64,000 nt of DNA from Oopsacas minuta (taxonomy: Eukaryota; Animalia; Porifera): NCBI GenBank assembly GCA_024704765.1, contig JAKMXF010000033.1, positions 892,847-956,846 on the forward strand, read 5' to 3'. The position numbers and the translations under genes were made by a program. Each line of letters begins with the position of its first letter. Position 1 is the first letter of the stretch. Below the pieces are notes generated by a model. It did no database searches. It worked only from the letters and a program-made list of their open reading frames with translations, and had not been told where the DNA came from. Positions 5,432 through 29,700 of this stretch are shown here, piece by piece.

Positions 5432-6997
5432 ATGGCAGCTAAATATGTAGAAAACCTTGAACCCGAGATAGCTGAATCTTTGTGCCGAGTCAGAAGAAAA
5501 GATGGAAAATTGGGCGGTTTTAGGAAAGACATTTTGGTTGAAAATATATCAGAGACAGAGATGGCTGCCTTGCTTTGCAACCGTTGCCAAGGAATCTTAA
5601 GAATGGCATGTTTTTCAGATAGCGGCGAGCATTTTTGTAAATGCTGTATGAAATTTCTGGAACCAACATATACGAACACAAAATTGAGGAAAATAATTTA
5701 TTCACTCAAAAGCTCGTGTCCTTTATACAATCGAGGCTGTCATCAGCTAGGAAAACTAGGAAAATGTGAGAAGCACATGGCTGTATGTGAATATGTTTAT
5801 GTGCAATGTGAAGTAGCCTGTGAAATAGTGTTACCACGTCATGAGCTCAAAATACATATGAGTGAAATTTGTGTACAACGTGATATTCCGTGCGAGTACT
5901 GTGATCAATATTTCAACGTGTATGGTATGATTTACCATTTGAATCAGTGTGACAAGATGCCACTAACATGCGAACAAAGATGTGGCACAGTGGTGTGTCG
6001 CGAGAATATGGCACAACACCTAGAAAATTGTTATCTTGTAGAAGAGGAATGTAAATTAGGCTGTGGAATAGTGTCACCACGTGATGAGCTTGAAATTCAT
6101 ACGAATCACGAGTGTATACAACGGGAAATAGGATGTGAGCATTGTGGAAAGAATTATAAAGTTTGTGACATGCCTAGCCATAATAAAGAGTGCACAAATA
6201 TGCCACTGCCATGTAAACAAAAATGTGGCTCAATTGTGCATCGCAAGGATATGAGAGAAAAGTGTCGTGATATGCCTAACCATCTGGTAAAGTATCAAAT
6301 CGAACCACTAAGATGTGAACAAGGATGTGGCATATTGGTGTGTCTTGAGGATATATCACGACACCTAGATGAGGAATGTGTAGAGAAGAAGGTAGAGTGT
6401 CCGTTCATAAAGTACAAGTGTGAAGTAGGACTAATCAAGAGGAAGGAACTCAATGTGCATTTGGAGGAGAAAAGGACTGAACACACAGAATTGAAACTCA
6501 GTGCTATGGAAGAGATGGTTATGGAACAGGACGAAATGATCAGAAAAATGTCTAGCCGTTTTACAACACTTTGTTCTATCACCAAAACCACTGAACTTAA
6601 ATGGAAAATTGAAAATGTAAGAGATATTCTATCCTGCAACAGTTTTTCAACTTCAACATCTCCAAAATATGAAGTTGCTGGATTCAAATTCAATTTCAAT
6701 TTATCAAGTTATGCCTCAATCAATATTCTTTTCCCAAGCCAGGAAACATCCAAATCTTCACCTGGTAAGCTAAACTGGCCCTTCAAAGCAAAATTTTTAT
6801 TTCGTATGATTTGCCATAACGACCCAAATGGCATATTGGAATATAGAAGCAATATAATTGAAATAAGGCAGGAAGATTGCAGTAAATATGAGTACATTAG
6901 TGATCCTATTGCTCAAATAAATGCTGAACATGCAACTAGTATGTACTATATGATAGACGGTGGTATTGATCTAGAAATATTTGTAATTTTACAATAA
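5432..6997 (+). CDS. TRAF-like protein, copy 2 (more Zn-finger repeats)
   Basis: Paralogous to 3328..4659 (shared CEVGLIKRKELN.HLE.KRTEHT.LKLSAME, WPFKAKF, DGGID.EIFVI); 521 aa. Confidence 0.85.
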   Translation: MAAKYVENLEPEIAESLCRVRRKDGKLGGFRKDILVENISETEMAALLCNRCQGILRMACFSDSGEHFCKCCMKFLEPTYTNTKLRKIIYSLKSSCPLYNRGCHQLGKLGKCEKHMAVCEYVYVQCEVACEIVLPRHELKIHMSEICVQRDIPCEYCDQYFNVYGMIYHLNQCDKMPLTCEQRCGTVVCRENMAQHLENCYLVEEECKLGCGIVSPRDELEIHTNHECIQREIGCEHCGKNYKVCDMPSHNKECTNMPLPCKQKCGSIVHRKDMREKCRDMPNHLVKYQIEPLRCEQGCGILVCLEDISRHLDEECVEKKVECPFIKYKCEVGLIKRKELNVHLEEKRTEHTELKLSAMEEMVMEQDEMIRKMSSRFTTLCSITKTTELKWKIENVRDILSCNSFSTSTSPKYEVAGFKFNFNLSSYASINILFPSQETSKSSPGKLNWPFKAKFLFRMICHNDPNGILEYRSNIIEIRQEDCSKYEYISDPIAQINAEHATSMYYMIDGGIDLEIFVILQ

Positions 6998-7094: not shown

Positions 7095-7550
7095 TCTATA
7101 TTTTTAAATCTCAATTGTTGTTTGTTTGTTTGTCCGTTGTCAAGGAAGGGATTTACGGTATGCAATTTTGAAATTGTAGCACAACTTTGTATTTATCGTG
7201 TTTATCAAGGAAGTAAAAGAATTCAATAAAACTTCACTAAAATATATCGAACTTGCTGAATCCGATTTTCACACTTTTGGATTAATCATATGCAAACTTA
7301 TTGTTGTTTTTATGAATACAAAGTAAACAAATTAGCAAAATCCCGAAATGTACGTAGATACTTGCCCTCAACGGCTACAATGGGGGTTGATCTTACAAAG
7401 TAATTCAATAATATGTATGCCATATACGTATATTTGTGAATACATTGTTCTAAATATATCTATATTATAGGAGCCGTCAATTTGGAGAATAATGGATATA
7501 TCGAGGCGGAATGCGCCGAGTTCATCGCGAAGCGACGAAACAAAGGCTCG
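7095..7550 (+). mobile_element. Non-autonomous Helitron-like element
   Basis: A|TCTATATTTTTAAATCTC start, (TGTT)n near 5' end, TCGC-GAA-GCGA hairpin, ends CTCG|T; highly similar to 29101..29667. Confidence 0.65.
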
Positions 7551-7563
7551 TATAATATAATAA

Positions 7564-7968
7564 ATGGCAGAAAAGTCGATTGGAGTTTATCCAGAATTAT
7601 TGATGTACGCAAACAACCACTCGTGCCTGAGATATGAAGGGAATTGTGTCGAGTTAGAATGTCGGTTGTAAAAGTACCCATGTCTATTCATGCGTAGTAA
7701 GGGGAAAGGTTGAACAAAGTCTCAGTCCTCCAAAACAAATCCATGGTGACTTAAAGATCCCTATTCCGACTCCGAGGGTAAACACTTAATCCGAACCGAA
7801 TCCCGTAACATTGTCGGGAATCAAAAATGTATTGTAGACAGAGGGGAAATTCTAGGTTATAAGAGAGATATTTTACTAGAAAATTAGTCACAGAGAGAGA
7901 GAGAAAGAAAGAGTGTGTGCATTCTTGCTATGTACCATTGTAAGGGGATCATGATAGAAGCTTGAAAA
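7564..7968 (+). pseudogene. TRAF-like copy 3, 5' fragment
   Basis: ATG GCA GAA AAG start; PEI*RELCRVR, GYKRDILLEN*, FLLC.(fs)CKGIMIEA match the N-termini of copies 1 and 2, with stops and frameshifts. Confidence 0.75.
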
Positions 7969-8149
7969 TTATGCCTCACTCTATTGAAATTCACTTCCAA
8001 ATATTATTATCAACCATCAACCTTTGGCATATTATAATAATCAAATATCATTGAAAAAACAATCATTGGAGGAAGTAGCCATAAATAGCCACTCAAAAAT
8101 CTCTGCCTACAGGGCATTTATATTTGAAAGTACAAATGGGGATGGGATG

Positions 8150-8185
8150 CACAGTGTGGCAAAATGGCCATAATGGGGAAATAGG
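8150..8185 (+). repeat. Left (3') terminal inverted repeat, long-spacer end
   Basis: CACAGTGTGGCAA-AATGGCCATA-ATGGGGAAATAGG. Confidence 0.9.
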
Positions 8186-8455
8186 TAAATGAATCTGTAT
8201 TATCGCCACAATTATACTTACATATACTAAATCGACACTGTAGATTTCAAAAATACCAATGATTATTTAGTAGCACGACTATAAACCTAGTTATGACGTA
8301 ATTACTGACATTTTCTAATTTTTAACACTTGTGGTTCATTAGTGAGGATATTATGAAAGTTGATAATACATGCATGTCATGGTCTCTATTCTGCTATTTG
8401 ATAACGTACAATTTAAAGACCCTTAATTATGTATGACTATTGGATATACTTATTA

Positions 8456-10588
8456 TCATAAATCATCTGATAGTATACTATTATATAATATCTCTTGGAG
8501 GCTATTTGCAACGTCTCTTTTCTTCTTTGCGTGCATCAAACGATTCTGTACTAAGATGGGGTCACTACAACATAACAACCTGACTAAAATATCTCTAACA
8601 TTATCAGTGAAAGAAGTTTTTCTTGCAAGATTCTCCCGATACCGCCTTACAAATTTATTGCAGGATTCTAAACATTCCTCAGAGAGATTCTGTAATCCCT
8701 TACCATTATTATAAGCACCTATTAACTGAAACGAATGGGCAAGTAACTTGTGCAAAGATGGAGTGATGCTTGCCCATGGGTACTCAATTAGAATAAATTC
8801 GTACGTTTCTTTGCACAATTCTTGCATTTTGTCACAGTTAATCAAGTCACCACTGTTGAGGAGTCTTAACAAAACAGATAGATTTGTCTGGATCTTCTCT
8901 AATGATATTTTATCTGAAGGATTAATGGAAGAAGTGGCCCACGTCAAAAAGTCTCTCTTATTTAAAAAGCAGTCTCGCGCAATGTTACCAGTGGTTGAAG
9001 TGCCGCCCTGGCTTGAAGGGATATCGACACTGAAATTACATCTTTCCTGGAGTATAGCTCGAACCCGTTTCATGGAAAAATTTACTTTCGAGTTTGATGG
9101 CGCCCATACCTTGTGTCCTGCATCAAGATGGTACATCAACAGCATGAACCACCTGAATACACAAAGGTAAGCATGCAAAGGAGATGCAGCTATAATATCG
9201 ATGTTAGAAGTTGGTTGATGCGTAATACCAACACGTTGATTTGATGGGAGTTTCAAGTAATCTTCTTCATCAACCTCTTCAAAAAGTTGCCGAGCGTCGC
9301 TAATTAGTCTGTTAATAGGGAAACCAGAATGGGCCCATTCTAAACTTTTAATTTGGCTATCCGTTGCAGTACACAGATGACAAGAAGCCCCACCAGCTCC
9401 ATCCAGCAATCCTGCCATCTTGGTATCAAAAAGGGAACGGACTATCTCGACCTGTGCATGGCCTCCAATAAGAGATAACCCATCCTGTATGATATGGTCT
9501 GTTTGAGGATTGACTATTGTATTCATGATAAGCTTTACACTAGAATAATCTTCTTTCAGAGCTATCAGTGCTACTGGCCTAAAGCAGAACGGAGAGTTGG
9601 GTGAGCTGTTATAGAACACGTCATTTCCAAGTGTGTCTGTAATTGATATTACTTTGAATCCGAACAAAATGAAAGTTTTTGTGCTTAATGCAGAATTGTT
9701 GCTTTGTTGGTTATAGGTTTGATGACAACCGGAGCCATCCAATCCATCAGATATCTTAATTTTGAGTGGGTAGTGTGAATCAGGAACTGGGTCTAATGTT
9801 GAAAGCAAGCGTTGAATGGTCAGACTAAGGATGGAATGATAAGAGACGCAAGTCCCAATTGACAATGCTTCGGGGTCTCTGACTATTCCCATTTCATTTA
9901 TTAGGCTTATTTCCCTACGATATTGCGAGACAAGTTTATAGGAAGGAAGCTTAACATCACCTTTGAGAATTCTTTTCAGATTCGTGTATTTACTCGCCCC
10001 AATTTCTAATCTGTCCAATATATAAGCACATTTAGAGATTTGTACTTTGTTCAATACACCGCTAAAAGATCCCTTATCAATTATTTCTCTGCACATGTCT
10101 GAAGTATCACGGTCATAGGATTTATTTGAGACTAATTCTAAAGCTAGAGCGAGTAGTTGTTTAGGCTCAATCTTTTCTCTCTCTGCTAAAAAGTCCACAT
10201 GCTCTAAAAGAACACCAAGTCTCGATCTGGAAGTCTTCATGTGACATTCGAGAATATGCTTCCGGGATTCAGTTACAATCTGTTCTGAAAAGTTTCGATT
10301 TTCAGAATCAGTGACTAAAGAAAATTCAGGATCAAGCGATATTCTCTTTCTTGGATTGGATATTGTTAGATGAGTAGAGTGGAAAATCATATTATCCCAT
10401 GTTTCAAGATCCTTCCTGCGGTAAGCCTCTCTGGATGTTAGAAGTGATTTAAATTTTAAATGAAGAGTAGCAGTTTCTTCTTCGGATAAATGGTTGTTCT
10501 CAATAAGTTTCCTAACAGAGACTGTAACACTTCTTCCATTCGAAATATACAAACTATATGCCTCATTGTTGGTGATTAGTACAGACAT
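8456..10588 (-). CDS. RAG1-like/Transib DDE transposase (~710 aa from first ATG at 10588)
   Basis: KISDGLDGSG (D600-equivalent region), FDTKM (D708), CHLC plus LHKLLAH (Zn site), GNIAR, SEECLESCNKFVRRYRE..ARK (E962); no stops. The ORF-track start at 10597 is a TTG. Confidence 0.92.
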   Translation of the reverse strand: MSVLITNNEAYSLYISNGRSVTVSVRKLIENNHLSEEETATLHLKFKSLLTSREAYRRKDLETWDNMIFHSTHLTISNPRKRISLDPEFSLVTDSENRNFSEQIVTESRKHILECHMKTSRSRLGVLLEHVDFLAEREKIEPKQLLALALELVSNKSYDRDTSDMCREIIDKGSFSGVLNKVQISKCAYILDRLEIGASKYTNLKRILKGDVKLPSYKLVSQYRREISLINEMGIVRDPEALSIGTCVSYHSILSLTIQRLLSTLDPVPDSHYPLKIKISDGLDGSGCHQTYNQQSNNSALSTKTFILFGFKVISITDTLGNDVFYNSSPNSPFCFRPVALIALKEDYSSVKLIMNTIVNPQTDHIIQDGLSLIGGHAQVEIVRSLFDTKMAGLLDGAGGASCHLCTATDSQIKSLEWAHSGFPINRLISDARQLFEEVDEEDYLKLPSNQRVGITHQPTSNIDIIAASPLHAYLCVFRWFMLLMYHLDAGHKVWAPSNSKVNFSMKRVRAILQERCNFSVDIPSSQGGTSTTGNIARDCFLNKRDFLTWATSSINPSDKISLEKIQTNLSVLLRLLNSGDLINCDKMQELCKETYEFILIEYPWASITPSLHKLLAHSFQLIGAYNNGKGLQNLSEECLESCNKFVRRYRENLARKTSFTDNVRDILVRLLCCSDPILVQNRLMHAKKKRDVANSLQEILYNSILSDDL

Positions 10589-11234
10589 GATCCGCAAAAG
10601 GGCTACTTTAACATAGAAACATTATGATATATGATTGTAGAGTATTGGAATAACTAATAACCAGCAAAATATAGAATTTTACTGAAAAAATTTAAAACGT
10701 ATGAAAAATATATTTTTCGGATTTTTGTCCGGTCCGGACAATGAATGACGTGATAAATTTTTGGGCAGCTTTTGGCAAGCCTGGAAAGTGATTAAATAGT
10801 TGACTAAATATAGTAACATTACTTATATATTAATAACGTTTTGTCAAATTTTGTCAAACAAGAGATGCTACACTTCAATCAATGAGAAAAAATTCCAAAT
10901 TATAACTTTGGGAGGGCCAAACTAGACACCCGGAAAAAAGTACAAATGAATATCTAGACTAACCTATCAATGATTAAATTGTTGTTACAATATAGATTTA
11001 TTATCAGAAGATGTTTTTCACTCTTATATTTAGTATTTACATCAAATATGATTACATACATTAGGGCATAGGAATTTGAGGTTTGAAAATATATATTTCT
11101 ATTATTAGAAACACATAACAAAGTTGTGCGTAGTTAGGATTCCTAACTGCTTCTAATGCTGCCAATGATATTTTCGTACTAATTGAACTATGGAGAATTC
11201 GAAAAATGCATTGAAATATGTTTTTTAAAATATG

Positions 11235-11261
11235 CCTATTTCCCCATATTGCCACACTGTG
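11235..11261 (-). repeat. Right (5') terminal inverted repeat, short-spacer end
   Basis: Reverse complement CACAGTGTGGCAA-T-ATGGGGAAATAGG. Confidence 0.9.
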
Positions 11262-11266
11262 GGATG

Positions 11267-11353
11267 ATTGCTAATTTATTCCGTTCCAGGAGGTTTGTCC
11301 GTTGTAGAGGGATTGTTCGCATCTCGGAGTGTCCGTTTTGGGAGATTCCACTG
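11267..11353 (-). mobile_element. One end of a pogo-type MITE next to the Transib insertion
   Basis: ...GGAGATTCCACTG|TA (rc TA|CAGTGGAATCTCC); same terminus at ~21603-21617. Confidence 0.55.
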
Positions 11354-11356
11354 TAG

Positions 11357-12487: not shown

Positions 12488-13330
12488 TTAGTTATGTTTA
12501 GACTTTTTAACAAACTTATCAAAATGGAAGTCATCACTCGACTTATCTTGTCTATGTCTTTTCTTTTCTACATCCTTACCTAGCACTACTTCTTGTATGT
12601 CAGGGAGGACTGTACTTCTGTTCTTTTCTCTACTCCCCCCCTCTCCCATCTGCTGATGCTCACTGAAGTTGGTTGCTAGGTTAGTTGGAATGAGAGAACT
12701 CTCTCCCTCCTCTTGTCTCAGCTGTTCTCTAACCAGCTGACGTACTGCTTCCTCTGTAGCTTGAATATTCCTGAACTTCTCATCCACACCCAAATCATAC
12801 TCAGGTATACCAGACAGAATCTGGTTAGACAGCATTTCTTCAGAGCTTAACTTCTTACCAGATTGTAAACTCTCTGGTATAACATATAGCTCCTTCAGTT
12901 TATTCTCATAAGTGCTGCTAGTCTCTATAGGTGCATCGCACTTGTCTGAACTCCCAAACCGCTTGGACATCTCCTTGTCAATGTAATTGAGCATATTTAT
13001 GTCTTCATCTCTCTGTTTAGTCTCAGCAGCAAAGTCACTTGACATTTTCTTGCTGATATTATCTCCTTCTATGAAATCACTCGTAAGATCACTAAGCTCT
13101 ACCAGTCCCCCAGAGGAGAGCTTTAAGGTATCGCTTGGACCATTCTGCTGGAGAGGAACATTCACCTCTCCGAATGCTAGAGCTGTAGCATTGATTCCCT
13201 GAGGTCTGCTCCTGAGAGATTGCAACTTTCTACTCTCTTCTAGCTTACGATGAATATTCGAGATATCTTCTCCATCATCTACTGTATTGTCAGTCTTTCT
13301 GATGTTCTTAGGACGAGTTCTCCTTTTCAT
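12488..13330 (-). CDS. C9orf78: Splicing factor C9orf78 / HCA59 / Tls1 homolog
   Basis: F.AET..RDED..M..YI..E..KR, EEMLSNQILSGIPEYDLG.D.K..NI..TE.A, DD.H.DKF.K. Confidence 0.9.
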   Translation of the reverse strand: MKRRTRPKNIRKTDNTVDDGEDISNIHRKLEESRKLQSLRSRPQGINATALAFGEVNVPLQQNGPSDTLKLSSGGLVELSDLTSDFIEGDNISKKMSSDFAAETKQRDEDINMLNYIDKEMSKRFGSSDKCDAPIETSSTYENKLKELYVIPESLQSGKKLSSEEMLSNQILSGIPEYDLGVDEKFRNIQATEEAVRQLVREQLRQEEGESSLIPTNLATNFSEHQQMGEGGSREKNRSTVLPDIQEVVLGKDVEKKRHRQDKSSDDFHFDKFVKKSKHN

Positions 13331-14463: not shown

Positions 14464-16542
14464 CAGTAAACATTGGATTTAACGACATCGGCTTTAACGA
14501 CAAATCGCTTATAACGACTCATTTTGCTTGCCCAGAATCTCGCAGCATTATTCTGCACACACCATACCTCGGGTATAACGACCTGTCAGATAACGACACA
14601 TTGAATTTAGCGACATATTTTCTATGCCTGCTCCATGCAAATCCAATTGGATATTACGACTTTTGGGCTGTCTATACTGTGGACTTAAGAAAAGTGTACT
14701 AGTGAATTATTAAGGTTTTAATAATTGATTTAATTATAAAACAATTATAATCTCCTTTTGAATCAACAGCACCTGACTTCTTACGAAAACGCTTATTAAA
14801 AGCTATTGTACGTACAATGTAATGTTAAAATTTAATCGTCATGGATTCGAGCGGACTTGGCAAAAGGAAGCGCTTTTCTTTTGCTGAAAAATACAAAATT
14901 TTGAAGGAGCTTGATGCAGGAGCTAAGCGACCATTCTTGGAGCAGAAACATGGCATTTCACATGGGACCCTAGCCGGCTTCTTGAAAGATCGGGCGATGA
15001 TTGAAACTTCCATCGCAAGTGCATCAAATCTTGTTTCGAAGAGCACAAAGCTGTCTCGATACCCGGAGATAGACACTGCACTGCTTGAGTGGTTTCGTTG
15101 TTTGAAGAGCACAGCTCCAGATGAGTCAGTCACCGGTCCCTTTCTTCTAGAAAAGTCGATATGCATCGCGGAGAAACTGAAAGTACGAAATGTGCCTGGC
15201 TACCTCGAACCTGTGTTCCTTGATCTGAACGGGATAGATCGTTGGAAGAAGCGCCATAACATCACCAGCCGTCAAATCTCGGGTGAGAGCCAATCAGCAG
15301 ATCACGCTGGTGCTGACAACTGGATATCAACGCAGCTGAAACTGATCAGAGAAGAGTTTGAAGACAGGGATATTTTCAATGGTGATGAGACTGAGCTATT
15401 CTGGAAGATGACACCAGACAGAACTTTGTCTTTCCGAGGAGACTTGTGCAAAGGAGGCAAGCGCTCCAAGGAACGCCTCACTGTATTGGTAGCAGCTAGT
15501 GCGCTTGGGGAGAGGTTTCCGCTACTGGTTATTGGAAAGAGTAAGCGCCCCCACTGTTTCTGAGGCGTCCTGAATCTTCCAGTGGAGTATGATGACAAGT
15601 GAGATTTTTGAGAAATGGCTAAGGAAGTTGAACAATTCTATGAGATTTGACGACAGGAAAATCGCCAAGATTCTTGACAACTTCTCAGGTCATCCGAACC
15701 TTAACTTGTCCCATATCAAGCTTTTCTTTCTCCCACCCAACACAACGTCTATGACTCAGCCCATGGACGCAGGTATAATCAAGAACCTCAAGCACCACTA
15801 CCGCCGGTTTCTTGTTAGGAAGCGTTTATTGGCAGTTGATTCTGAAACGGGGTTTAAGCTTGACTTGCTCCAGGCCTTGGACTGGCTAAAAATGTCCTGG
15901 GATAATGTCACCCCCACAACCATCAAGCATTGCTATCAGCATGTTGGGTTCAAGGATTTACCTGCCACTGAAGAAACCTCAGCACCTGACACATCAATTT
16001 GGAGCAGTGCTGAAGAAGCAGGGCTTGTTTCGGATGGCTTATCATTTGAGGACTTTGTTGCTCTGGATGATGGTGTTGCAATTGGACCTGGTGAAATGGT
16101 CTCTAAATTGACGATATCCTTAATAGTCTGCACCCTCCAAGTGATGACGATGTTGATATCGAAAATGACGACAATGAATATCCCCTCAATATCCATGTTC
16201 CGTCATTCGACACTGTTGTCTCATGCCTTGACACCGTTATGAAGTTCTTGCGCACCCTCCCATGCTCAGAGAAACAGATTCAGTCTGTCAGCGAACTTCA
16301 AAACTTCTTGGCTGAAAGTCAGCTGAGTCGATTGCAGTAGGCCTCAATAACTAGCTTTCCAAGTCAAACTAATCATATTCATGACATTATTATGACGTTA
16401 ATACAACAACATAGTATACTACATCGTATAACACGAATAAATATGGGTGTCATCCGGTATATAATGCATATATAAAGCTTCCTCGGATATAGCGACCTTT
16501 TTTGCCTGCCCAAACAAGTGTCGTTAAATCCAATGTTTACTG
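14464..16542 (+). mobile_element. Tigger/pogo DNA transposon, 2,079 bp, both ends intact
   Basis: Perfect 24-bp TIR CAGTAAACATTGGATTTAACGACA, TA TSDs, several subterminal TAACGAC repeats. Confidence 0.93.
14841..16340 (+). pseudogene. pogo transposase (CENP-B HTH + DDE_1), inactivated
   Basis: HTH, FNGDETELFW, LDNFSGH, QPMDAG; TGA at 15561-15563, frameshift near 15590, second frameshift near 16110, late TAG. Confidence 0.9.
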
Positions 16543-29100: not shown

Positions 29101-29667
29101 TCTATATTATTAAATCTCAACTGTTATCTGTTTGTTTGTTGGTTTGTCCGTTGTCAAGGATAGGATTTATAGTATGCTATTTTGAAATTGTGGCATAACT
29201 ATGTATTTATTGTGTTTATCAAGGAATTAAATAGAATTCAATAAAACTTCACTATCTATATATATCGAACATGCTGAATCCGATTTTCACACTTTTTGGA
29301 TTAATCATATACAAATATATTGTTGGTTTTATGAATATAAAGTAAACAAATTACTAAAATCACATAATATACGTACAGGCTTGCTCTAAACGGCTATCCA
29401 GGGGTAAGTAAGTACGCTGAATACGAATTTCACAGTTTCAAGTTTCTCATATGTAAATTTATTGTTGTTTTTACGAATATAAAGTAAACAAATTTCAAAA
29501 TTGAGGTAGAATCATACTTTCAACGACTGTACTGGAGTAATAGTGTAGGCTTAATCTGAATATTGTAAACAACATCAATATTATTAAATCTCTATTGTTG
29601 TTTGTCTGTTGAATACCCCGAGGCGGATTGTGCCGAGTTCATCGCGAAGCAACGAGCCAAAGACTCG
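29101..29667 (+). mobile_element. Non-autonomous Helitron-like element
   Basis: A|TCTATATTATTAAATCTC...(TGTT)n...GCCGAGTTCATCGCGAAGC...CTCG|T; similar to 7095..7550. Confidence 0.65.
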
Positions 29668-29700
29668 TATATATGTAAATCCAAATTGTAGAACATAATC

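Follow-up and report, generated by a model that had tools for sequence, protein, structure and literature searches.

The locus described here, in a 64-kb window from the genome of Oopsacas minuta (the window being the whole stretch of DNA analyzed, to whose positions all coordinates refer), raises the question of whether a sponge carries an ancestral-type RAG transposon or a member of a known transposon group, and whether the element is still mobile. RAG1 is accepted to be related to the Transib transposases and probably descends from them. To our knowledge, biochemical and structural work has covered a single Transib transposase, that of a moth, in which most of the NBD and of the long ZnC2 segment is missing. 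An earlier note made from the DNA letters had proposed that, if the host were an early-branching animal such as a sponge, the element would be a candidate ancestral-type RAG transposon. That premise is correct, since O. minuta is a hexactinellid sponge. The element, however, is an intact copy of a Transib transposon and belongs to an already described kind rather than to a novel type of RAG transposon. We assign a probability of about 0.88 to the reading that positions 8150 to 11261 are a copy of an autonomous Transib family that was very recently amplified in O. minuta and may still be active.

The element spans 3,112 bp (8150 to 11261) and has CACAGTG at each terminus, seen at 8150 and at 11261. 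It is flanked by the perfect 5-bp duplication GGATG (8145 to 8149 and 11262 to 11266), so that both of these claims of the earlier note are borne out. GGATG is also present twice in tandem on the left side (8140 to 8149), which leaves the duplication call unaffected. Named relative to the transposase open reading frame (ORF), the 3′ terminal inverted repeat is the long form (8150 to 8185, plus strand; sequence and repeat analysis) and comprises the terminal box CACAGTGTGGCAA (8150 to 8162), a 10-nt spacer AATGGCCATA (8163 to 8172), and the inner box ATGGGGAAATAGG (8173 to 8185). The 5′ terminal inverted repeat is the short form (11235 to 11261, minus strand), with its terminal box at 11249 to 11261, a 1-nt spacer at 11248, and its inner box at 11235 to 11247; the right terminus, ...TTGCCACACTGTG, ends at 11261 with GGATG directly after it. 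Both ends therefore combine a 13-nt terminal box with a 13-nt inner box, separated by 1 nt in one case versus 10 nt in the other. An 18-nt terminal pattern has two exact occurrences in the 64-kb window, versus 0.04 expected by chance, and the edges were reproduced by alignment of nine other copies, to within a few chance-matching flank bases. The remaining noncoding parts are 270 bp on the 3′ side (8186 to 8455, minus strand) and 646 bp on the 5′ side (10589 to 11234, minus strand), the latter presumably the site of the promoter and 5′ untranslated region. An Rfam scan of the window gave zero matches.

The sole long ORF in the element (8456 to 10597, minus strand) encodes 713 aa when started at TTG and 710 aa from the ATG at 10588 (8456 to 10588, with the stop codon at 8456 to 8458). 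It is a single, uninterrupted exon, in agreement with the ∼710-aa ORF reported earlier. The transposase contains the motifs DGLDGSG (residues 281 to 287), FDTKM (387 to 391), CHLC (403 to 406), LHKLLAH (612 to 618), and EECLESCNK (637 to 645). By alignment, the residues encoded on the minus strand by the codons at 9737 to 9739 (D284), 9425 to 9427 (D388), and 8666 to 8668 (E641) correspond to RAG1 D600, D708, and E962. Likewise, C403 and C406 of CHLC (9371 to 9382, minus strand) and H613 and H618 of LHKLLAH (8735 to 8752, minus strand) correspond to the RAG1 zinc ligands C727/C730 and H937/H942. The earlier note had held that the DDE residues and a C2/H2 zinc site were kept, and had named misalignment of the catalytic residues with RAG1 as grounds for refutation; the alignment bears out the first statement and shows no such misalignment. 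All seven residues are invariant in 26 proteins, down to 21% identity. Compared with the family consensus, the window protein has only two private changes, E234G and I485M. Annotation of the protein is sparse: a local Pfam scan of the ORF returned no family at an E value of ≤1, precomputed tables hold only a weak PF26100 match for the transposase, and UniProt labels the family protein as a RAG1 RNase H domain protein.

The AlphaFold model of the transposase (pLDDT 84) superposes on HzTransib with a Z score of 33.3 and a root mean square deviation of 2.6 Å over 467 residues, on the mouse RAG1 core (459 to 1008) with a Z score of 31.7 over 486 residues, and on mouse RAG1 391 to 1008, which includes the NBD, with a Z score of about 30. 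In the VIA-align alignment, model residues 104 to 688 map to mouse RAG1 391 to 1008. Residues 1 to 73 of the model form a small helical domain and residues 74 to 95 are disordered. Structure superposition and profile alignment both place an NBD-like helical domain at residues 104 to 178 (10055 to 10279, minus strand). The alignment of the family profile to RAG1 begins at the GGRPRQH segment, and at the position of the RAG1 GRPR motif, the family consensus reads RK and the copy in the window SRKH. A "mosaic" origin of the NBD-like segment was considered and rejected because NBD equivalents have been reported in both Transib subgroups (PMC9435367). Farther along the protein, profile positions 407 to 454 lack a HzTransib counterpart and are collinear with BbRAG1L. 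The span from C406 to H472 covers 67 residues, within the 63 to 80 found in relatives, versus about 33 in HzTransib. This long ZnC2 segment probably corresponds to the α11-α12 (RAG2-binding) region.

Several lines of evidence bear on the class of the element. Among solved structures, the best match by sequence is HzTransib (E value of 1e−26 from the single sequence), and the family profile scores 157 bits against HzTransib, versus 68 for BbRAG1L and 62 for RAG1. These scores and the aligned catalytic and zinc residues uphold the earlier assignment to the Transib type. The features by which Transibs are recognized are present: a single gene encoding a RAG1-core homolog of ∼700 aa, the D/D/E and C2/H2 residues, 5-bp duplications, and a CAC heptamer. 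The asymmetric repeats and retained long ZnC2 segment are those of Transib Subgroup I, although the CTT1 tail of that subgroup is absent; the resemblance to Subgroup I is judged from profile scores, structure, and feature lengths. Searches with a profile of distant relatives and with the closest nonsponge representative reached neither HzTransib nor RAG1L nor RAG1, and the only new name they returned was a krill (Meganyctiphanes) protein.

Two other identities for the locus were weighed against the Transib assignment. A RAG-like (ProtoRAG/RAGL-type) transposon in a sponge, or a direct ancestral form of one, might be suspected from the heptamer identical to the RSS consensus, the 5-bp duplication, the asymmetric ends, and the resemblance of the NBD-like domain and the long ZnC2 segment to RAG1 and RAG1L. 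Yet there is no second gene within the 3,112 bp, where all other ORFs of at least 80 aa run antisense to the transposase ORF and overlap it; no RAG2-like gene (kelch with or without PHD) lies between the terminal repeats; and no RAG1-type N-terminal RING or zinc finger region is detectable by Pfam. The element is classed as a Transib and not as ProtoRAG/RAGL because it has no RAG2-like gene. The profile scores also favor HzTransib over BbRAG1L and RAG1, and every RAG-like feature, namely, the RSS-type heptamer, asymmetric ends, NBD-like region, and long ZnC2 segment, is already published for Transibs (PMC1131882, PMC9435367). We therefore consider a RAGL-type element very improbable, its gene content effectively refuting it. 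The earlier comparison with ProtoRAG as an ancestral-type RAG transposon is not supported; the note's own caveat, that nesting among described Transib families with the same ends would lower the novelty and not the identity of the element, is the one that applies here. Still more improbable is a domesticated RAG1-like host gene. The intact ORF with conserved catalytic residues and the UniProt name would suit such a gene, but it is refuted by the copy structure: no fewer than 10 near-identical copies lie at unrelated loci, with the same repeats and differing 5-bp duplications.

These copies also date the family. Nine further full-length copies are 99.6 to 99.9% identical across the same 3,112 bp, every one at a different site, and the ten copies, including that in the window, differ from the consensus at 1 to 8 of 3,112 positions (0.03 to 0.26%). 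CACAGTG is present at both ends of every copy except one (L003, with CGCAGTG at its 5′ end), and the long-end repeat (8150 to 8185) is unchanged in 9/9 of the other copies. Perfect 5-bp duplications, no two alike, flank 9/10 copies (CATCC, AAGTA, CTTTA, GGCCG, CATTA, ATTAG, CTTGG, TGTGG, and TAGAG), or 8/9 when the window copy is set aside. The different sites and different duplications indicate that the family moved very recently. The earlier note had called the element young and proposed a search for other copies with distinct duplications, which the ten loci supply; it had also proposed a search for empty sites, and none was found with rejoined flanks in the window and the fetched loci. At 90% identity, 33 annotated O. 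minuta proteins cluster together, with one identical 710-aa sequence, equal to the family consensus protein, encoded at 5 loci and other members 143 to 662 aa long. Since the nine loci were retrieved via intact 710-aa proteins, the intactness of their ORFs is partly a selection effect. In contigs from the source sample, coverage of the element is far deeper than that of unique flanks, and one contig represents an internally deleted derivative in which 8197 is joined to 10824. Such derivatives are typical of live cut-and-paste families.

The family may still be active today. It is possible, though the less probable reading, that the family burst recently and is now silent or dead, or that the window copy is inactive, the intact ORFs reflecting youth. 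The ORF changes (9 nonsynonymous versus 5 synonymous) are compatible with neutral decay after insertion, the window protein carries its two private substitutions, and no evidence of transcription and no empty or polymorphic site came from the fragmented source-sample contigs, which may derive from either RNA or DNA. Against silence stand the identical consensus protein at five loci, the divergence of copies from the consensus by merely 0.03 to 0.26%, and the internally deleted derivative. A recent entry into O. minuta by horizontal transfer appears unlikely, more so than silencing. The burst of copies in O. minuta is star-like, sequencing runs from two other organisms (B and C) contain copies 90 to 95% identical, one contig from these runs begins exactly at the terminal repeat, and massive transfer among Transibs has been inferred (Tao 2022; PMC9435367). 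Organisms B and C may, however, be close relatives of O. minuta, and this genome also holds numerous divergent Transib families (35 to 51% identity) from the same sponge clade, which fits a long residence. Recent amplification of a possibly still active family remains the preferred reading.

Judged from its homologs HzTransib and RAG1, the 710-aa transposase, a DDE enzyme, would dimerize and bind both ends via the CACAGTG-containing terminal box, with the inner box probably bound by the NBD-like domain. Cleavage would start with a nick at the heptamer border and leave the flanking DNA closed as a hairpin; the excised element would be inserted with a 5-bp stagger. Function may also require one short and one long end. 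More tentatively, and with odds somewhat below those of a silenced family, the element could be an active, RAG2-independent Transib in which the NBD reads the inner box and enforces short/long pairing, a 9-bp analog of the 12/23 rule. If so, the family would provide a live model of how the ancestor of the V(D)J recombinase recognized asymmetric signals before RAG2, and one from among the earliest-branching animal lineages. The current picture of RAG origins is unchanged by the sponge family. With an apparently intact consensus protein that has an NBD-like region and long ZnC2 segment, and with short, well-defined asymmetric ends, it would make a convenient system in which to ask whether asymmetric ends and NBD-type recognition are older than RAG2. 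No description of Transib in sponges was found in the literature that could be searched, and Porifera are not named as hosts by Tao 2022 (PMC9435367); the present family appears to be the first explicit record of a recently mobile Transib in that phylum.

Comparison with known systems places these properties in context. HzTransib of Helicoverpa zea (PDB 6pqn, 6pqx, and related entries), the best match in both sequence and structure, shares the single gene, CAC-heptamer ends, 5-bp duplication, and DDE and zinc residues at only 21 to 23% identity. At its N terminus, the sponge protein is about 180 residues longer, a stretch that includes the NBD-like domain and is mostly missing from HzTransib (PMC4840297); the distance from CxxC to the following conserved His is also greater in the sponge protein (67 versus about 33 residues). 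Vertebrate RAG1 core with its 12/23 RSS and amphioxus ProtoRAG (BbRAG1L/2L) show the same NBD-to-CTD fold (Z score of about 30), catalytic triad, zinc site, heptamer, and 5-bp stagger, with a sequence identity of 16 to 18%. Insect Transibs with 12/23-like ends (Drosophila Transib5 and Anopheles Transib2/N1-N3) likewise have a heptamer and an inner conserved box at unequal spacing (Kapitonov and Jurka 2005). The sponge heptamer is CACAGTG, the RSS consensus, whereas the insect Transib consensus is CACAATG. The two spacings differ by 9 bp in the sponge and by about 11 bp in the insects, and the sponge inner box is GGGGAAATAGG-like rather than an A-tract nonamer. The AanRAGL element of Aureococcus, with a 13-bp terminal and an about 10-bp inner element and 4/13-bp spacers (PMC9435367), has the same 9-bp spacer difference, although it carries a RAG2-like gene that the sponge element lacks. 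The asymmetric repeats, long ZnC2 segment, and NBD-like region are shared with Subgroup I Transibs of the ctenophore and Hydra Transib-9 type (PMC9435367). The duplications of the window family are 44% G+C versus 36% for the window (n = 9) and not clearly GC-rich; GC-rich duplications have been reported for other Transibs (PMC1131882).

The 9-bp asymmetry, the same in all copies of the window family, recurs in two other sponge families, L010 (46% amino acid identity; duplication GTCAG) and L012 (39% amino acid identity), and families that keep it form a natural comparative series. In L013, the asymmetry is about 10 bp and the alignment less clean; in L011, terminal inverted repeats were looked for and none were found. 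Three related families likewise carry CACAGTG at each end, and the duplications GTCAG and AAGTT occur among related families. A C-terminal CxxCGxxGHx(n)C tail, similar to the CTT1 tail of Subgroup I, is carried by sister sponge families and by about half of the distant relatives, and this CCHC (CTT1-type) tail has been lost in the window family.

The element occupies positions 8150-11261 of the window (3112 bp), with CACAGTGTGGCAA as its first 13 nt and the reverse complement of CACAGTGTGGCAA as its last 13. A duplicated GGATG target site, read from the window, flanks it on the left (8145-8149) and right (11262-11266). The 18-nt terminal pattern matched twice in the 64 kb, at the element ends only, with 0.04 matches expected by chance. 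The sole substantial ORF (8456-10597, minus strand) encodes a transposase of 713 aa from a TTG, or 710 aa from the ATG at 10588; two shorter plus-strand ORFs overlapping it were discarded as mechanical artefacts. Rereading the window bore out the anatomy described in the earlier note: the GGATG duplication, the shared terminal sequence, the long ORF, and the transposase motifs, which lie at residues 281-287, 387-391, 403-406, 612-618, and 637-645. The element's neighbours are ordinary genes of the sponge: on one side a TRAF-type zinc-finger gene (5432-6997), on the other a Hep_59 gene (12488-13330).

By sequence, the closest solved structure is the Helicoverpa zea Transib transposase (HzTransib; E 1e-26). 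A family profile built from 21 sponge-type relatives scored 157 bits against HzTransib, 68 bits against amphioxus BbRAG1L, and 62 bits against mouse RAG1, and residue equivalences were taken from these profile alignments. D284 (LDGSG in the sponge protein, CDGMG in RAG1), D388 (FDTK, YDEK), and E641 (LESCNK, NESGNK) align with RAG1 D600, D708, and E962, an alignment on which the earlier note had staked its reading. The zinc ligands C403 and C406 correspond to RAG1 C727 and C730, and H613 and H618 to H937 and H942. None of these seven residues varies among 26 aligned proteins, down to 21% identity. The position of the RAG1 GRPR motif is held by RK in the family consensus and SRKH in the window copy.

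The AlphaFold model (mean pLDDT, 84) superposes on HzTransib over model residues 179-710 (Z 33.3; rmsd 2.6 Å over 467 residues), on mouse RAG1 459-1008 over residues 179-687 (Z 31.7; 2.7 Å over 486 residues), and on the mouse RAG1 core with its NBD (391-1008) over residues 104-688 (Z about 30). From these superpositions, the predicted layout comprises a small N-terminal helical domain (residues 1-73), a disordered linker (74-95), an NBD-like domain (about 104-178), a RAG1-type DDBD/PreR/RNase H/ZnC2/ZnH2/CTD core, and a short C-terminal helix.

The window ORF matches, at ∼99.7% identity, a cluster of 33 proteins annotated in the hexactinellid sponge Oopsacas minuta (GCA_024704765.1). An identical 710-aa protein is encoded at five loci spread over four contigs. 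All nine additional loci that were fetched align to exactly window positions 8150-11261 at 99.6-99.9% identity, with unrelated flanks; these loci were picked via intact proteins, so the intactness of their ORFs is partly a selection effect, and other members of the cluster are truncated. The search for further copies with different duplications, proposed in the earlier note, yielded perfect 5-bp duplications at eight of the nine loci (AAGTA, CTTTA, GGCCG, CATTA, ATTAG, CTTGG, TGTGG, and TAGAG) and an imperfect pair at L007. Together with that of the window (CATCC in ORF orientation), all nine perfect duplications differ. At 44% G+C against 36% for the window, these nine duplications, a very small sample, do not clearly show the strong bias towards GC that has been reported in other Transibs (PMC1131882) and in RAG.

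The ten copies differ from the family consensus at one to eight positions (0.03-0.26%), the window copy at three (0.10%), and the window protein carries two substitutions, E234G and I485M, both away from the active site. The differences are mostly singletons, a pattern that would be expected of a recent burst. In the copy at L003, the 5′ heptamer (L003:2328-2334) reads CGCAGTG, with A changed to G at position 2, next to a still perfect GGCCG duplication. Because the heptamer depends critically on its CAC, here changed to CGC, this copy is probably immobile. Contigs of the source-sample runs match the unique flanks perfectly, at a depth far below that of the element. One contig, in run X1, joins 8197 to 10824, skipping 2626 bp, and represents an internally deleted, non-autonomous derivative of ∼486 bp with both ends kept. 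The family has transposed very recently, since five loci encode an identical protein, copies lie within 0.03-0.26% of the consensus, and a deleted derivative exists. The youth proposed in the earlier note is therefore upheld, whereas present-day activity is only plausible. No empty or polymorphic site was found in the window, the fetched loci, or the sequencing-run contigs.

The earlier note had proposed, should the host be an early-branching animal such as a sponge, a candidate ancestral-type RAG transposon from outside the deuterostome ProtoRAG cases. We rejected a ProtoRAG/RAGL transposon: the element contains no RAG2-like gene, for which its non-coding parts of 646 and 270 bp leave no room, and a Pfam scan of the ORF found no RAG1-type N-terminal zinc-finger region. 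A domesticated host gene was rejected on the structure of the copies. The Transib transposon instead matches an already described kind in every defining feature tested.

Both ends consist of two 13-nt boxes. In ORF orientation, the 5′ end reads CACAGTGTGGCAA, a 1-nt spacer (T), and ATGGGGAAATAGG; the 3′ end, as its reverse complement, reads CACAGTGTGGCAA, the 10-nt spacer AATGGCCATA, and ATGGGGAAATAGG. This arrangement is common to all ten copies. The same single 9-bp indel between conserved terminal and inner boxes occurs in L010, from a sponge-associated assembly (46% protein identity; duplication GTCAG), and in L012, a second O. minuta family (39% protein identity), and a fourth family, L013 (duplication AAGTT), has an asymmetry of about 10 bp. 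The spacing is kept while the sequences diverge, which argues that the asymmetry is functional. Asymmetric ends are not new in kind among Transibs: 12/23-like ends were described by Kapitonov and Jurka 2005 (PMC1131882; see also PMC8355894), and end asymmetry is reported for every Subgroup I Transib (Tao et al. 2022, PMC9435367). The same paper gives the Aureococcus RAGL element a bipartite 4/13-bp plan, again a difference of 9 bp.

The sponge transposase differs from HzTransib in three respects. It keeps the NBD region, most of which HzTransib lacks (PMC4840297). Its segment from CxxC to the next conserved histidine spans 67 residues (63-80 in its relatives) against about 33, and profile positions 407-454, which HzTransib does not match, are collinear with BbRAG1L. 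Finally, in many sister families the protein closes with a CxxCGxxGHx(n)C tail that is gone from the window's family. The defining traits of Subgroup I are asymmetry of the TIRs, retention of the alpha11-alpha12 region, and a CTT1 tail, and NBD equivalents occur in both Transib subgroups (Tao et al. 2022, PMC9435367); judged by these features, the sponge clade resembles Subgroup I. Outside sponges, the closest representatives share only about 24% identity, one of their relatives being from krill. At least 10 further O. minuta gene models (P0013, P0015, P0024, P0043, P0049, P0051, P0053, P0054, P0237, and P0239) are 35-51% identical to the transposase; the Transibs of O. minuta therefore fall into several divergent families rather than a single one.

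A literature search limited to full-text papers found none that describes Transibs in sponges. The O. minuta genome paper pools "Other (Mirage, P-element, Transib)" in its RepeatMasker table (1,552 elements, 1.22% of the genome) and does not discuss these elements beyond that row. The element is of value mainly as a well-preserved representative, convenient for experiments, from an early-branching animal. Copies 90-95% identical over window 8150-10700 were found in coded organisms B and C (runs X5 and X6), one contig beginning exactly at the TIR; either the hosts are related or the family could have been transferred horizontally.

Diverse DNA transposons abound in the compact O. minuta genome. 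Flanks of other copies hold further transposase genes (L006:5397-8030, L004:6516-7239, L007:745-1634, and L009:1427-1852) of THAP9/P-element-like (877 aa), FAM200/ZBED5-like, Tc3-type HTH, and KDZ types. A weak match to a Tc5/pogo-type HTH, under the Pfam cut-off, marks a 240-aa ORF at window 14841-15563 as a possible further transposon remnant. A distinct, very high-copy repeat (7200-7700; summed contig depth of about 346,000 in X1 versus about 300 for unique flank) lies close upstream of the insertion, and its first 170 bp are plentiful in B and C as well. Directly right of the element, a ∼78-bp repeat (11278-11355), extremely abundant in the B and C runs (depth of about 100,000 in X6) and loose-ended on either side, has a 79%-identical copy in the L003 flank (6702-6786), and may be a MITE or SINE common to these hosts. 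Window 29417-29670 and the element flank at L008:6795-7048 have an unrelated 255-bp repeat in common, at 83% identity.
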